NCBI GenBank assembly: GCA_965644295.1
Contig: CBFFRP010000609.1
Location: forward strand, 1 to 6,793
Source: Paraphysomonas bandaiensis
Lineage: Eukaryota > Protista > Chrysophyceae
Direction: 5' to 3'
DNA length: 6,793 nucleotides
Shown here: positions 1 to 6,793 of the stretch, one piece after another
Position numbering within the stretch: position 1 is the stretch's first letter
Layout of the letters: each line of letters opens with the position of its first letter
Program-made: the position numbers and the translations under genes
The notes under the pieces: model-generated
Databases searched by the model: none
What the model saw: only the letters and a program-made list of their open reading frames with translations
Told to the model about the DNA's origin: nothing

Positions 1-204
1 AGGAACATGTATTCCTTGATTAAAAAGGAATAGAGTGTGTTGCCTAAGACTTAGAGTTGCAGTACAACTGACATCATACATGCAGAAGTCGCGACTTCGG
101 TATTGCACAGCTAACTGCAGTGACAGAGTCGATTGTCAACTGTTCTGAATCTTGTATGCTGCCTAGATTATATTGATTTGTGTGTTTGCATGCTTTATAG
201 CTCT

Positions 205-225
205 CTATCTATCTAACTATCTATC
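205..225. repeat. Short imperfect (CTAT/GATA)n microsatellite
   Basis: ctatctatctaactatctatc. Confidence 0.6.
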
Positions 226-755
226 ATACAAGTGAATGACCTAATGGTAAATGCTTTGTGTTTTTCAGTTAAATGAAGTAATTCGTTCAGCTTGGACAGC
301 TAGGAAAAAGTATTTTATCGCATCCGTTATAATTCAGTACTGGCACTGTTATGTACCCCTTTACTGGTTCTGATCTATTTGAACACTCAAAGCTCTGTTT
401 CATGTCAACTTTTTGTTTGGCATTCTATTCTTTAAAGCATGTTGTATGGTGTCGTTTTCTCTCATTCTCTTCAGTTGGGAGAACTGTTGGCCTTCTTATA
501 TTGGCTTCCAATAATTTTGAAGTATATGTTATATGACTGGTTTCCGAGCAGTTTTTGTAGGAACGTATTGTGATTCGTCCTAGTAGAGGAAGGAAGCAGT
601 GTTGTGATGTGTGCTTGTAACTAATAACCATGACCTAGATGTGGTCTTCAGCTGTCATCTCAGAAGGCGTAGTTCATACCTCGGGCACGTCAATAAAATA
701 CACTATACTTTGATCGCCTGTGGCGTAGAGTACGAAGTAACATATCTAGAATGAA

Positions 756-860
756 GTGTTACTAAGTGTGAATAGAAGTAAGTTTTACTAGTGTTTACAA
801 AGTGTGAATAGAAGTAAGTGATACTAGTGTTTACTAAGTGTGAATAGAAGTAAGTGTTAC
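756..860. repeat. 36-bp minisatellite, about 2.9 copies
   Basis: AAGTGTGAATAGAAGTAAGT is exact at 764, 800 and 836. The intervening 16-mers TTTACTAGTGTTTACA and GATACTAGTGTTTACT are near-identical. Confidence 0.95.
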
Positions 861-1520
861 GAAGTTACACACAAAGTAACATCATATCTTATCAAAAACT
901 CACTTAATATTCAATTGATTAAAATTGTGGTGAACATTTCTCACCATGACTGTCATTCATCTAATCTATATCGCCTCTACTACAAGTCTGTAATCATTAT
1001 CAGCAAATCTTAGATAGTCACGATCTTATGCAATCAATGTACAATATTCAGTTTCACAAATATAGTTCTGATCATTTCATTAGTTAATGTAATACTGTTT
1101 TAAACTACTGTGTTAGAATTGGATTTTCACTGAATTTAACTTTGCTCTACACGTAAACCTTAATCTTATCTGTTATATAGTCACACATCAGTAACTGAAT
1201 TTCCGGACACGAGCTGATGTCTGAGTATGCACATTTAGTGCAGATGCGTGAGCCAACCGTATTTAATCCTCAAAATGAGCAGTACGTTAGTCGAGAAGAT
1301 TACCACCACATCGCAAGATATTTTCTGCAATAAACGTTACAAAATATGTTTTCTTAGAAGTCAGCTATATCCACACAGCAGCTTATCAGCTAGCTTCCGT
1401 ATATATAAGTTGTTTGTAGCACACGTACAAGTGCAACGAGATAATACTTTTATTGCAATATCTCTTATTATAATAAAAGAATGATGACATTATTGGTTGC
1501 TCTGGGAGTAGTAAGTGTAC

Positions 1521-2074
1521 CCGCAGGACATAATCGTGACTTCCCATCATCATAGGCATATGTATCACCTGTTGATACTGCGTCTGTAAAATCAGCTCCT
1601 ACTACATCTGCATAAACCTCAGAAACATCTAATTGCTAGTATGAGATTGCAATCTTTGAACATAGATGCCTACATTTTCTTTGGCAAGAATATGTTGATA
1701 AATGTCTTGAGCACGACGAGTGAATCATACGTCCCATCGTTTCCAGTGGTTTCCCACCCATTGTCACACAACTTATGAATGAAATATAGTTTTCATGTAC
1801 GGCTATGTTACCTCTCCTCGACAGCTGTCCCATCTAGGCTGGAAGAAGGAAGGATGTCAAGTACAAGATAAAGTAGTAATTAATGAAGAATTTATTTCTT
1901 TTAAGTGTGATATTTTACTATACATACTCCAATCACTCTATTTGTTGGTGCGTGTGTTTGTCGGTGCCATGTTTTCCTCTGAATTTCATGAATGGAATCA
2001 GAGATTTCCACAGATCATAATCATACGTACACTCTTGTCATAACAATACGCTCAATACATAAGAGTATATGCAT
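1521..2074 (-). pseudogene. Probable micro-exon gene or pseudogene, Cys-rich extracellular-type product; candidate exons 2074-2027, 1978-1928, 1838-1812, 1771-1731, 1669-1521
   Basis: Four GT-AG introns of 48, 89, 40 and 61 nt (donors GTATGA, GTATGT, GTAACA, GTATGA) join in frame to MHILLCIERIVMTRVYRKTWHRQTHAPTNRVIGPRWDSCRGELCDNGWETTGNDGTHLCSKIAISY*QLDVSEVYADVVGADFTDAVSTGDTYAYDDGKSRLCPA. 21 of 38 codons after the TAG begin with G. This is a hand-built model with no recognised homologue. Confidence 0.4.
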
Positions 2075-2656
2075 GTAACGGTCAGTTCTATCAGTATTGA
2101 GAGTTCAGTTCATGTGAATGGGATGATACTCTGATAGAGACATCTCTAAGTATGTATAGAGGATAGAATGTGCTCTATTTGATAACATATTCAAGAAGAT
2201 CTCCTGCAGGTTACTATAATGCTGCATGTTGTATGGGGATACTCTATAAGATCATCACTCCTCTAGACATGCTGTGCATGTGTACATACATGGACATATA
2301 TGGACATCTGCTGTATATAGATTTTTGTAGACGAATTTAGGCGTATTTTAAGCTTATTACAGGCTTTTTAGCATAAAAAACCGCTTTTATATAAAGAGTT
2401 CAATAAAAGTTGGCGGTCTTTATTCAGACCAGGCCTGAAAACCTCAAAAAAACGACAAAACAGTAACATATAGAAACACACGTTACAATATTAACCTCTT
2501 AAAGTGTTGATACAAAGTATTCACTATAGATGATTGAGACATGAATATCTTCCCAACAAGTAGTCGACATGACCGGAGAGAGGAGTTATTTCATCGCATA
2601 ATGAAATTACACACATATAATGCGGTCAACTATCGTATGGATGACATATTTTTTGT

Positions 2657-2777
2657 TTAGGCCCTGTTGGATTCATACAATGGATTTTGGTGCTGGATTT
2701 TCATTCACTGGATTTTTGAGAAATTCCACTGGCTGAAAAACCAAAAAATATACACCACATCTTCAAACATGACATAA
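2657..2777. mobile_element. Degenerate fold-back element, MITE-like (possibly Tourist/PIF-Harbinger type)
   Basis: Inner arms 2694-2716 and 2721-2743 are reverse-complementary at 18/23 positions. The ends TTA-GGCCCTGTTGGA and TCAAACATGACA-TAA are partly complementary. The motif TGGATT occurs four times on the left arm. Confidence 0.4.
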
Positions 2778-3078
2778 ATTTGTTAGGAATATTCCCACAT
2801 ATACATATGGTGTGATCCACCCGCCCCACACACTACTTTTTTTTATAGGATAGTCAAGCTGTTCCACAGACAATCATGCAGAAAGTTGACACGAAGTTTT
2901 ATGAAGTGAAGTGAGACGACAGCTTCCACACACTCCGAAGTGACTATACGGAGATATGTATACATAACAAGAGTGAGTGTGATGGTTAAACACAACTAAC
3001 AAACACACATATACACACTCTCATCAGATCAGACACTCTTCAGCCTCTTCAGTCCCAGTGCTCTGCTCATCCACTGAT

Positions 3079-3139
3079 ATGCTGTCTGAGTTGTGTCTGT
3101 TCCTCTGCGTGGCTGTTATGGGATATCAACCATCTCAAG
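3079..3139 (+). other. Exon 1 encoding a probable signal peptide
   Basis: MLSELCLFLCVAVMG-YQPSQG has a hydrophobic core LCLFLCVAVM followed by small residues. The unspliced frame stops at TGA 3178-3180, so splicing is needed. Confidence 0.8.
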
Positions 3140-6100
3140 GTAATGGTTCGTGTTATCATACTAACATAATGATCATATGATTGATTAGGCCATAATATAT
3201 CTGAGTTACATCGTCACTTATCTCATCAACAACTCTATTCGCTCACTTTTATAGCTGGAAACGGTGAAGAGGGACACTATGATGCGATTGGGACAAACTC
3301 AAAGTTTATCCGACCCGCTGGCGTGAAGTTGTACTCCTCGGATCAATATGCATTGATTGGTGATTATACCCGTGTACGTAAGATCGATTTGGCTACAATG
3401 GCAGCATCCACTGTGGCTGGAAATGGATTCGGTGGTAACACTGATGGTGTTGGAACCCTTGCACAGTTTGTGGCACCATATGGATTAGCGATATCTTCGG
3501 ACAATAGTTTCGCAGTGGTGGCAGACTTTGACAGTCATTACATACGACTGTTGCTGTTATCATCTCGGCAAGTTGTTACTCTTCATCCTGACGGTTCTGG
3601 GGGTGGATCGCAGGACGGTGGATCAGCATCTAGTTTCAATAGCCCACGTGATATTGTACTATCTGCAGATGACTCGTATGCCCTCATTGTCGACAGATAT
3701 AATAATCGAATTAAGAAATTAGTTCTGACAGACAAGATCATCACTACTGTTGCGGGCGGCTCGAGTGGAAATGCCGATGGTATTGGTACAAATGCTCAAT
3801 TTAATAATCCTATTGGTATGTTCATGTCCTCTGACAAATCTTTTGTGTTGATAACAGAATTTGCGGGTAATCGTGTACGTAAGATGGTATTATCGACATC
3901 TATGGTTACTACCATTGCAGGATCTAGTTCGGTGGGTACGGTGGATGGTGTGGGAACTTCAGCTACTTTTTCGGCCCCATCATCGGTGGTCCTTTCCCAA
4001 TCGGACACTGTGGCATATGTGACTGACCTAGGTGGACATGCCATTCGACACATTGATATGGCCACCCTGCAGGTGACAAGGGTCGTTGGAACCACGGCCG
4101 ATGCATGTATAGATGGTGTAGGTACAAGTGCTTCAATTTCAACCCCTTCTTCCCTTGACATTTCTGATGACGAGTCATTCATGTTAGTTTCTAGTATGTA
4201 TAGCCATCGTATTGCCAAGGTCAGTGGCCTACCTACTCTCCCTGTTAGTTTGCCGACAATTTCTCCCACAATTTCACCATATAGTGCTGCCGAGGTGACC
4301 TTTCTGTGTGACATGGTCACTTTTACCAGTGTGGGTATTGTGCACCCGAGCTGGAGTTGCACCAATACCGATGACAGAACGGCATGGGATGGACTCGGCT
4401 TTAGCGATGGGTCAATAATCAGTATAGATTTGAGTTCACGTGGTTTGAGTGGCACGCTGCCATCATCCATAGGGTCATTGACGAAACTAACAGCCTTGAA
4501 TTTCAAATCGAACATTCTCGCTGGTGGTGTTCCCGATACCATAACTTCATTGTCAAATCTCAGTCTACTTAATTTCGGTAATAATTCTTTGCAAGGAACT
4601 ATTCCGATGGGGATGGTGGATATGACTAATTTAATTAATATTGACTTAGGAAGCAACCGTCTGAGTGGAGTGATACCTCCATTGAATGGTTTAATGTCCG
4701 GTCTTACGAATCTGAGATTAGATTCGAACATGCTTTCTGGTGGTATTCCATCGACTTTGGGTGAAATTGTAGGTTTATATTTTATTCGAATTTATAATAA
4801 TCTTCTCTCTGGGCCCCTTCCAACTGAACTCAGTTCGTTGATGAGTCTACGGATTCTCAGTGCGGCTAACAACGTATTATCTGGAACTCTACCTTCGGCT
4901 TTTGGGGTCCTCAGTCGTATGGAAGTATTTCAGTTGAATGGGAATTACCTGACTGGAAGTATTCCTTTGTCGTATGCGAATTTAAATTCGATACGGTCAC
5001 TCAGGTTGGACTCTAATAATTTGAATGGGGACTTTCCTCCTGGTCTTTGTGATATTTCTGGAATGGATGTTTTCTATTTGACTCAGACGTCTCATCATGA
5101 GTGCAGAATACCATCTGCTCCTCCGTCGTTTGCCCCAACGATTTCCCCCACTGCTATTCCCACTGCGCCAAGTCTCCACCCTTCGGGAGAACCGTCTGGG
5201 CAACCCTCGGAGCATCCTTCTTATCAACCATCATTGCGTCCAACGGGAATTCCGACATATATGCCTACAGGGGCACCGTCAGCTCAGCCTACTTGTGAAC
5301 CCTCGTGGCTGCCTACTAGTCAGCCTTCATCGCTGCCTTCGAGAGAACCGTCTGGACAGCCCACTACTCAACCTTCAGAACAACCTACTAGTGCACCTTC
5401 ATCGATCCCTTCGGTAAAACCGTCTGGATACCCCACCAGTCGACCTTCAGTACAACCTTCTGCCGCACCTTCTGGAGAGCCTACTGGTGTACCTTCTGGA
5501 CGGCCAACTGGCGAGCCTACTTGTGCACCTTCTGGAGAGCCAACTAGTGAGCCTACTTGTGTACCTTCTGGAGAACCAACTGGCGAACCCTCTAGACAAC
5601 CTACTTGTGTACCTTCTGGAGAACCAACTGGACAACCTACTGGTGTACCGTCTGGCGAGCCATCTGAACAACCTACTAGTGTACCTTCTGGACAGCCATC
5701 TGGACAACCTACTTGTGTACCTTCTGGACAGCCAACTGGCGAGCCATCTGGACAACCTACTAGTGTACCTTCTGGACAACCTTCTGGAGAGCCTTCCAGA
5801 CAACCAACTTATGTACCTTCTGGACATCCAACTGGTGAGCCTACTAGCGTACCTTCTGGAGAGCCAACTGGCGAGCCCTCTGGTCAACCTTCTGGACAGC
5901 CAACTGGTGAGCCTACTTGTGTACCATCTGGAGAGCCAACTGGCGAGCCATCTGGACAACCTTCTGGTGTACCGTCTGTAGAGCCAACTGGCGAGCCTAC
6001 ATGTGTGCCTTCTGGACGGCCATCTGGCGAGCCTACTTGTGTACCATCTGGACAGCCAACTGGCGAGCCATCTGGACAACCTACTAATGTACCATCTGGA

Positions 6101-6793
6101 CAGCCAACTTGTGTACCTTCTGGAGAGCCAACTGGTGAGCCCTCTAGGCAACCTACTGGTATACCTTCGGGAGATCCAACTAGCGAGCCCTCTGGACAAC
6201 CTTCTGGAGAGCCAACAGGTGAACCTACATGTGTACCTTCTGGACGGCCATCTGGCGAGCCTACTTGTGTACCATCTGGACAGCCAACTGGCGAGCCATC
6301 TGGACAACCTACTAATGTACCATCTGGACAGCCAACTGGCGAGCCTACTTGTGTACCATCTGGACAGCCAACTGGCGAGCCTACTTGTGTACCATCTGGA
6401 AAGCCAACTGATGAGCCTACTGGTATACCTTCGGGAGAGCCAACTAGCGAGCCCTCTAGACAACCATCTGGAAAGCCAACTGGCGAGCCTACTTGTGTAC
6501 CTTCTGGAGAGCCCTCTAGACAACCTACTGGTGTACCTTCGGGAGATCCAACTGGCGAACCTACTTGTGTACCTTCTGGAGAGCCAACTGGCGAGCCTTC
6601 TGGACAACCTTCTGGAGAGCCAACTGGCGAGCCATCTGGACAACCTACTAGTGTACCATCTGGACAGCCAACTGGTGGACCTACTTGTGTACCTTCTGGA
6701 GTGCCTTCTTATGTACCATCTAGCGAGCCTACTTGTGTACCTTCTGGAGTGCCAACTGGCGAGCCATCTGGACAACCTACTTTTCTGCCTTCA
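3079..6793 (+). CDS. Secreted/cell-surface NHL-repeat + leucine-rich-repeat protein with long Pro/Ser/Thr stalk; join(3079..3139,3189..>6793), 3'-partial, >=1222 aa
   Basis: Hand translation shows frame +2 open from 3185 to the window end with no stop. ATG 3079 starts a hydrophobic leader (MLSELCLFLCVAVMGYQPSQ) that joins this frame through a phase-1 GT-AG intron. NHL, LRR and PS/PT repeat motifs follow in order. Confidence 0.93.
3140..3188 (+). other. 49-nt spliceosomal intron (phase 1)
   Basis: Donor AAG|GTAATG at 3139/3140. Perfect branch consensus TACTAAC at 3159-3165. The first AG after it is TTAG at 3185-3188. Removing the intron restores the frame (CAA G|GC CAT). Confidence 0.8.
3236..4222 (+). 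other. NHL-repeat domain, six ~55-aa repeats (probable six-bladed beta-propeller)
   Basis: Six copies of T[IV]AG...DGxGTxAxFxxPxG[ILV]x[ILV]SxDxxxxx[IV]xDxxNxR[IV]RK, e.g. TTVAGGSSGNADGIGTNAQFNNPIGMFMSSDKSFVLITEFAGNRVRKM and STVAGNGFGGNTDGVGTLAQFVAPYGLAISSDNSFAVVADFDSHYIR. Confidence 0.88.
4292..5104 (+). other. LRR domain: N-cap, nine 24-aa plant-specific-type LRRs, Cys-containing C-cap
   Basis: Repeats match LxxLxLxxNxLsGxIPxxLxxL, e.g. LINIDLGSNRLSGVIPP, LTNLRLDSNMLSGGIPSTLGEI, MEVFQLNGNYLTGSIPLSYANL. N-cap EVTFLCD...WSC...WDG. C-cap GLCD...HEC. Confidence 0.93.
5168..6793 (+). repeat. Coding 12-bp tandem repeat encoding (P-[ST]-x-x)n, 135.5 units, mucin-like stalk
   Basis: A proline codon occurs every 12 nt without a register break from 5168 to 6788. 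Main units are PSGE, PSGQ, PTGE and PTCV. Confidence 0.97.

Follow-up and report, generated by a model that had tools for sequence, protein, structure and literature searches.

An NHL propeller and a plant-type LRR domain on a long PT/PS stalk in Paraphysomonas bandaiensis: probable outer part of a giant REJ-GAIN-seven-helix receptor

This study examined a 6,793-nt stretch of DNA from the chrysophyte Paraphysomonas bandaiensis, which is the entire contig CBFFRP010000609.1 (C609) of assembly GCA_965644295.1 and is called the window below. On its forward strand lies the beginning of one gene, which encodes a hydrophobic leader, an NHL propeller, a short PT linker, a plant-type leucine-rich repeat (LRR) domain and a PT/PS stalk, inside which the contig ends. 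Analysis of this gene and of its paralogues in the eukaryotic assembly that was searched (62.5 Mb, 669 contigs) points, with fairly high confidence, to a giant receptor that has its N-terminus outside and a base of REJ, GAIN and seven-helix parts, akin to polycystin-1, the sea-urchin REJ proteins and the adhesion G-protein-coupled receptors (GPCRs). The window would then encode its N-terminal head and its stalk, the outer 40% of the receptor gene. The features of the gene in the window are as follows.

2930-3078, + strand: upstream part of a 5' module (putative core promoter and 5' untranslated region), from paralogue identity
3079-3139, + strand: exon 1, with the ATG at 3079 and a 20-residue hydrophobic leader (putative signal peptide), ending in phase 1
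3140-3188, + strand: intron of 49 nt, GT..AG with the AG at 3187-3188 and a TACTAAC branch-point-like motif, predicted from sequence
3189-6793, + strand: exon 2 (incomplete), open up to the contig end
3236-4228, + strand: six-bladed NHL beta-propeller, from Pfam, AlphaFold2 model and Foldseek
4232-4279, + strand: PT linker of 16 residues, from sequence; also the 5' boundary of an exchanged LRR cassette
4286-4414, + strand: LRR N-cap, in which the cysteine pair C373/C390 is invariant; the cap motif is also present in the metagenome protein P0392
4415-5062, + strand: nine plant-type 24-residue LRRs (LxxLxLxxNxLxGxIP), from register, Pfam, model and Foldseek
5063-5113, + strand: LRR C-cap with a cysteine pair (C620 and C638, invariant)
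5114-6793, + strand: PT/PS stalk, a strict P-[ST]-x-x tetrapeptide array with 560 residues within the window, cut by the contig end

The frame at 3185-6793 comprises 1,203 sense codons with no stop, and there is no start codon close to its beginning. Removal of the predicted intron puts the leader of exon 1 in phase with this frame, and the intron shows one mismatch among five paralogues. Exon 1 is likewise near-identical in five paralogues, in which codon 3 alone varies. The preliminary description of this stretch had placed the NHL, LRR and stalk parts almost all in one exon, and the open frame bears this out. It had also reported a signal peptide: the 20-residue hydrophobic leader stands as an exon of its own, with a Kyte-Doolittle 9-residue maximum of 3.3 in its core, and its identity as a signal peptide stays putative. 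The counterparts of exon 2 in the paralogues comprise 2,353-2,548 codons.

The six NHL repeats proposed earlier were recovered. The pattern DG.GT.A.F..P is repeated six times in the propeller, and the Pfam search of 3191-4282 gave matches to Str_synth (4.8e-7) and NHL (7e-5, above the cut-off), together with a weaker match to Arylesterase. The AlphaFold2 model of the head, built on five paralogues, showed six four-stranded blades with a strand pLDDT of 70-87, and the arrangement of the propeller and the LRR domain in this model is undefined (pTM 0.47). Foldseek against the PDB matched the propeller with the NHL domains of NHLRC2 (6g7w) and SOQ1 (7djl), and also with Pizza6. The public proteins nearest to the head are multi-NHL surface proteins with 35-41% identity, none being above 41%, and the NCBIfam search gave sub-threshold LRR-effector and NHL matches only.

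Since Str_synth was the best Pfam match, was accompanied by Arylesterase, and many database relatives of the propeller bear automatic lactonase names, the propeller might be taken for a surface-displayed enzyme of the lactonase, strictosidine-synthase-like or amidating-lyase-like type instead of a binding module. However, the enzyme-type Pfam matches span single blades of 28-30 residues only, in structure the propeller comes closest to the NHL domains of NHLRC2 and SOQ1, which are non-catalytic, and the relatives are multi-propeller surface proteins. An enzymatic propeller is therefore regarded as highly improbable.

The PT linker lies exactly where it had been placed, and the nine plant-type LRRs behind it, also described earlier, were recovered between two cysteine-pair caps. 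The Pfam search of 4283-5179 gave LRR_1 (5e-17), LRR_8 (2e-10) and LRR_14, and the solenoid was modelled by AlphaFold2 with a pLDDT of about 90. Foldseek against the PDB found as its best matches the ectodomains of the plant LRR receptor kinases MIK2, ERL1, GSO1 and FLS2, with 33-40% identity and a root-mean-square deviation of 1.2-1.9 Å. The 24-residue NxLxGxIP repeats and the cysteine-pair caps are shared with the ectodomains of plant receptor kinases and receptor-like proteins. Unlike in those proteins, there are nine repeats only, placed behind a propeller and ahead of 560 or more residues of stalk, with neither a kinase nor a single-pass anchor. Diatoms are known to have PS-type LRR surface proteins of the MRM2 type (bioRxiv 10.1101/2024.04.15.589526, citing Schulze et al. 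2015).

The giant PS/PT array reported earlier was confirmed as the stalk, in which 5180-6793 matches the Pfam PT repeat at 1.4e-110. Pro makes up 25% of its 560 residues, Ser 16%, Gly 14% and Thr 12%, and the spacing from proline to proline is 4 in 138 of 141 cases. Seventeen cysteines (5288-6745), each within PTCVPSG, are separated by spacings that are all multiples of 4 residues. Being in phase with the tetrapeptide repeat, these cysteines may form regular inter-chain disulfides or cross-link stalks. The window stalk is collinear, up to the last residues of the window, with that of the closest paralogue (C247), whose array continues for about 100 residues more to a total of about 660 residues.

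Concerning the assembly, window 272-4635 differs at a single position from the final 4,364 nt of contig C516 (99.98% identity), and this end of C516 encodes, in a single frame, the matching propeller and linker as well as the LRR type of the window over its first 117 residues. Upstream on C516, 13.8 kb away and in the same orientation, lies another paralogue (C516a), which indicates that the genes are tandem duplicates; its last exon stops about 250 nt short of the stretch common to the window. Window 1-271 has no match to C516 and is 94% identical to the 3' flank of the paralogue on C79. A difference between haplotypes, recombination at this point or a join made in assembly could account for this mismatch.

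The near-perfect duplication of the C516 end, the resemblance of the first 271 nt to a different locus, and the shortness of a contig that ends in repeats would all fit a redundant or chimeric assembly by-product, in which the end of C516 would have been joined to the stalk of another paralogue, so that the combination of head and stalk would not be a real gene. But the presence of the matching head in one frame on C516 means that the head was assembled independently of C609. Moreover, the stalk is merely 88% identical to the nearest paralogue stalk and is thus no copy of one, and the frame is open across every junction. A by-product of this kind is accordingly thought very unlikely.

The part of the protein beyond the window was approached through the paralogues. 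The propeller has 53 matches in the genome, seven of which are NHL+LRR heads of the subfamily of the window; four of these seven sit in uninterrupted second exons of 2,353-2,548 codons. The five full-length paralogues have propellers 75-91% identical to that of the window, and the closest of them, C247, reaches 91% in the propeller and 97% in the LRR domain. Past the stalk of C247, the order is cysteine-rich pre-REJ module, REJ domain, EGF-like stretch and a segment of 390 residues that runs up to a splice donor; the exon after this segment begins with a 20-residue membrane helix. The REJ domain (Pfam PF02010) was detected in C247 with an E-value of 2.6e-39, and also above the cut-off in C79, C516a, C116 and C247b. 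Each of the four paralogues whose exon 2 is unbroken has the base, as does a frame-broken fifth copy on C247, and the REJ region is 86-97% identical across all copies.

The 390-residue segment was aligned among 19 paralogues and then folded with AlphaFold2, which gave a model of six helices followed by a beta sandwich (pLDDT 78.9, pTM 0.71). The ten best PDB matches of this model were all GAIN domains of adhesion GPCRs, with E-values down to 2e-8, and the matches include BAI2, BAI3, latrophilin-1 and -3, CELSR1, GPR110, CD97, GPR126 and GPR56. By sequence, the REJ-GAIN part gave no useful match among PDB chains. In the paralogues, the GAIN-fold immediately precedes the first membrane helix. 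According to hydropathy, the intronless paralogue C378 has seven hydrophobic segments beyond the GAIN-fold and then a long tail, and the exons of C247 carry a matching series of hydrophobic segments; a tblastn search of the C247 copy with the helix region of a distantly related intronless paralogue gave no match. The location of the GAIN-fold segment is L018:4556-5716 on the - strand.

The preliminary description had put the anchor outside the window, which was borne out by proxy, since the paralogues end in REJ, the GAIN-fold and about seven helices. Of the ends that it had proposed to look for (TM, GPI or kinase), the paralogues show neither a kinase nor a GPI signal, nor an anchor consisting of one helix: no kinase was found after the LRR domain in the paralogues, and the REJ-GAIN-helix series occupies that place.

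The same paralogues bear on the question of whether the copy in the window lacks a signalling base and is instead a secreted or wall- or scale-associated mucin-like adhesin, truncated at its 3' side, with a stalk that ends in a stop or an anchor beyond the contig. Partial members do exist in the family, the assembly has no contig that continues the window, and the periodic stalk cysteines could cross-link such a protein into a matrix. These points are opposed by the base carried by all four unbroken paralogues and by the frame-broken C247 copy, by the collinearity of the window stalk with that of C247 to about 100 residues before the end of the array, and by the position of the break, as repeat arrays are typical sites at which assemblies stop. 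We therefore consider the adhesin unlikely.

Two of the family members are irregular. One is a headless copy at C116:3878-9184 on the - strand, whose second exon opens directly in a different PT stalk; it was tried as the 3' continuation of the window and rejected, as the stalk differs. In the other, at C247:76000-85999, the frame is broken inside the LRR domain, leaving overlapping open frames of 543 and 1,768 codons.

Comparison among the paralogues revealed that the LRR cassette does not share the history of the sequences around it. The synonymous divergence of the window from C79 and C516a is 0.10 in the propeller and is saturated (>2) from the linker through the LRR domain. Two LRR types can be distinguished, one in the window and the C247 copies and the other in C79, C516a and C116; they are about 42% identical to each other, hardly more than the 37-38% that they share with LRRs on unrelated receptors. 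As this divergence lies between a conserved propeller and a conserved REJ region, the LRR block was exchanged as a cassette, the 5' edge of which is the PT linker.

The preliminary description had proposed dN/dS on the residues of the LRR concave face as a check, and in the sister LRR type an excess of substitutions was indeed observed there. Between C79 and C116, the differing positions comprise 84% of the concave face and 40% of the other exposed positions (Fisher 8e-7). The dN of the concave face is 1.03 as compared with an LRR-wide dS of 0.37, in crude pairwise Nei-Gojobori estimates from few paralogues of the sister type only. Judging from these substitutions, the presumed ligand face of the LRR domain is diversifying in the sister type.

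At the 5' end of the gene, a module of about 365 nt (~2930-3295) with sharp edges is 98-100% identical in all five paralogues. It takes in 150 nt of upstream sequence, all of exon 1 and the 49-nt intron, and reaches 100 nt into exon 2. The paralogue identity is 0.2-0.5 upstream of ~2910 and rises to 0.96-1.00 from ~2950. The coding regions of the same five paralogues have diverged to 65-90%, and the identity of the module holds even in C116, though that copy falls to 65-85% further downstream. This homogeneity suggests gene conversion, strong constraint or a shared regulatory cassette.

These data together make it probable that the window encodes the head and stalk of a REJ-GAIN-seven-helix receptor, and several results have to be set against this interpretation. 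The assembly contains no contig that continues the copy of the window in the 3' direction, so that its REJ, GAIN and membrane parts are missing, and since partial copies exist (the headless one on C116 and the frame-broken one on C247), the base of this particular copy is assigned by proxy. Among public proteins, there are no transcript fragments or close relatives of the head, the best match having 41% identity. The downstream exons of C247 gave no match to PLAT at E <= 5, to PKD_channel or to any 7TM Pfam family (7tm_2), and the GPS motif HL[TSC] within 3 residues of CxC was found in 0 of 142 homologues with CxC; it follows that the signalling mechanism of polycystin-1 or the adhesion GPCRs is not simply transferable. 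In addition, the evidence of selection comes from the sister LRR type, and the LRR domain of the window differs from the nearest copy at 5 of 216 positions, which makes the two too similar for a test of selection.

In the receptor that is proposed here, the base of the window copy, as drawn from five collinear paralogues, would lead from the stalk through the cysteine-rich pre-REJ module, REJ and the EGF-like stretch to the GAIN-fold, whose last strand would directly adjoin the first membrane helix; there would be about seven such helices and then a serine-rich cytoplasmic tail. The propeller and the LRR domain would bind external ligands, such as microbial, prey or conspecific surface molecules. 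The stalk would be extended and probably O-glycosylated, and may hold the heads about 150-200 nm from the membrane, beyond the silica covering; this reach is an estimate for 660 residues at ~0.25-0.3 nm each. Binding or pulling might then be passed to the GAIN/seven-helix base, by analogy with the adhesion GPCRs and polycystin-1, the latter of which has been proposed to be an adhesion-GPCR-like receptor with a tethered stalk (PMC9672506, PMC12513491). Cassette exchange would shape the evolution of the heads, and in the window the LRR block was swapped in at the PT linker.

Possession of the REJ domain defines the PKD1/REJ family (PMC1934368), and by this criterion the paralogues belong to that family; in topology they appear to resemble the adhesion GPCRs. 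As in polycystin-1 and the REJ proteins, a giant glycoprotein with an outer N-terminus carries its binding modules distally, polycystin-1 also beginning with LRRs; in the paralogues, a large REJ domain is likewise followed by a GAIN-type domain right before the first membrane helix. The differences are considerable. The paralogues have no PLAT domain after helix 1, no PKD-channel-like end and no HL/T cleavage motif, and hydropathy of C378 and C247 gives about seven helices in place of 11. The PKD/Ig repeats, the C-type lectin and the WSC domain are also absent, and the head consists of NHL and plant-type LRR modules on a stalk of about 660 residues. PLAT has one weak match in the whole genome, at an unrelated locus.

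With the adhesion GPCRs (class B2, such as latrophilin, BAI and CELSR), the paralogues share an adhesive ectodomain and the GAIN fold, after which hydropathy shows seven hydrophobic segments. They differ from them in having no 7tm_2 sequence match, no autoproteolysis motif, a loop of about 20 residues that usually bears a dibasic RRL motif, and a REJ domain. Compared with teneurin and bacterial NHL surface proteins, the six-bladed NHL propeller is similarly used as an extracellular module. Unlike teneurin, the protein has one propeller only and lacks a YD-repeat shell, a C-terminal toxin-like domain and an EGF dimerisation region; one sub-threshold teneurin-like EGF match was seen in a paralogue.

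Among stramenopiles, the literature search for REJ/GAIN receptors with NHL or LRR heads found none except the REJ gene of Ectocarpus. This gene, Esi0130_0068, encodes a REJ and GPS receptor of 1,427 residues with 6-7 predicted helices; it is expressed in male gametes and has been put forward as a positively selected recognition protein (PMC4700764). It is much smaller than the receptor considered here, and NHL, LRR and stalk parts are undescribed for it, the comparison being by description only. For the combination of an NHL and plant-type LRR head with a REJ-GAIN base, no published description was found.

Between the conserved CxC and the last GAIN strand lies a disordered loop of about 20 residues, in which 117 of 142 homologues have a dibasic motif, mostly RRL. 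This loop is a possible site of cleavage in trans. Lacking the motif for self-cleavage, the family members may stay uncleaved or be cut in trans at this loop, which is speculation. RXL sites are used in the processing of diatom silica proteins.

The preliminary description knew of no characterised protein with this architecture, which is, however, no one-off. Besides the seven NHL+LRR heads, the REJ profile gave 91 matches at about 88 loci in the genome, nearly all in open frames of 1,700-7,900 codons, and the pre-REJ module gave 90 matches. Outside the genome, an exhaustive search with a 1,199-residue base yielded 1,365 cluster representatives at E <= 1e-30, which align end to end with 30-40% identity; those looked up are from metagenome assemblies. 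The heads of the best 150 base relatives include NHL in two, LRR in one and both in none. A cluster member, P0392 (ENA ERZ27332993, a 23.6-kb contig; L049:1001-11581), is intronless and encodes 3,526 residues in the order LRR, LRR, three NHL blocks, LRR, NHL and REJ base, with the cap motifs of the window present. As P0392 combines LRR, NHL and REJ, this combination exists in at least one other organism.

The organism itself carries silicon-transporter genes at about eight loci. No candidate for light-harvesting proteins, PsbO or the RuBisCO large subunit was found in the genome, and the PsbO and RuBisCO controls responded in control genomes. These results indicate a colourless silica-maker and not a photosynthetic diatom, and prey recognition is more plausible in a phagotroph than in an alga. 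The role in prey or pathogen recognition or in adhesion that the preliminary description suggested would fit this lack of photosynthesis genes, as well as the tandem duplication, the exchange of LRR cassettes and the excess of concave-face substitutions.

On this basis, a broader proposal can be put forward, tentatively and with the expectation that it is more probably wrong than right: the approximately 88 REJ-GAIN-seven-helix genes, with their swapped and face-diversifying heads, might form a germline recognition repertoire for prey, microbes and mates in a colourless, phagotrophic, silica-scaled flagellate, in which GAIN would be opened by a secretory-pathway protease at RRL and not by autoproteolysis. 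The molecular basis of prey, microbe and mate recognition at the surface of phagotrophic protists is largely unknown. The family described here is large and tandemly duplicating, and appears to place interchangeable heads, among them NHL propellers and plant-type LRRs, on long glycoprotein stalks above the REJ-GAIN-seven-helix base known from polycystin-1, the sperm egg-jelly receptors and the adhesion GPCRs of animals. If the proposal is true, it would provide concrete candidates for prey- and microbe-binding assays, would mean that the GAIN/REJ chassis has served diversified recognition outside animals, and would supply a natural GAIN variant without the self-cleavage motif. The window alone is one incomplete member; still, it documents a clean swap of the LRR cassette and a homogenised 5' module.

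Two minor observations concern the remainder of the window. Long off-frame and antisense open reading frames occur in the stalk region, for example one of 442 residues, the longest, at 5447-6775 on the - strand and, in other frames, at 5097-5981 on the + strand; they were rejected as genes and are almost certainly by-products of the stop-poor repeat. In the intergenic region upstream of the gene, window 755-860 contains a 36-nt unit repeated three times with 91% identity.

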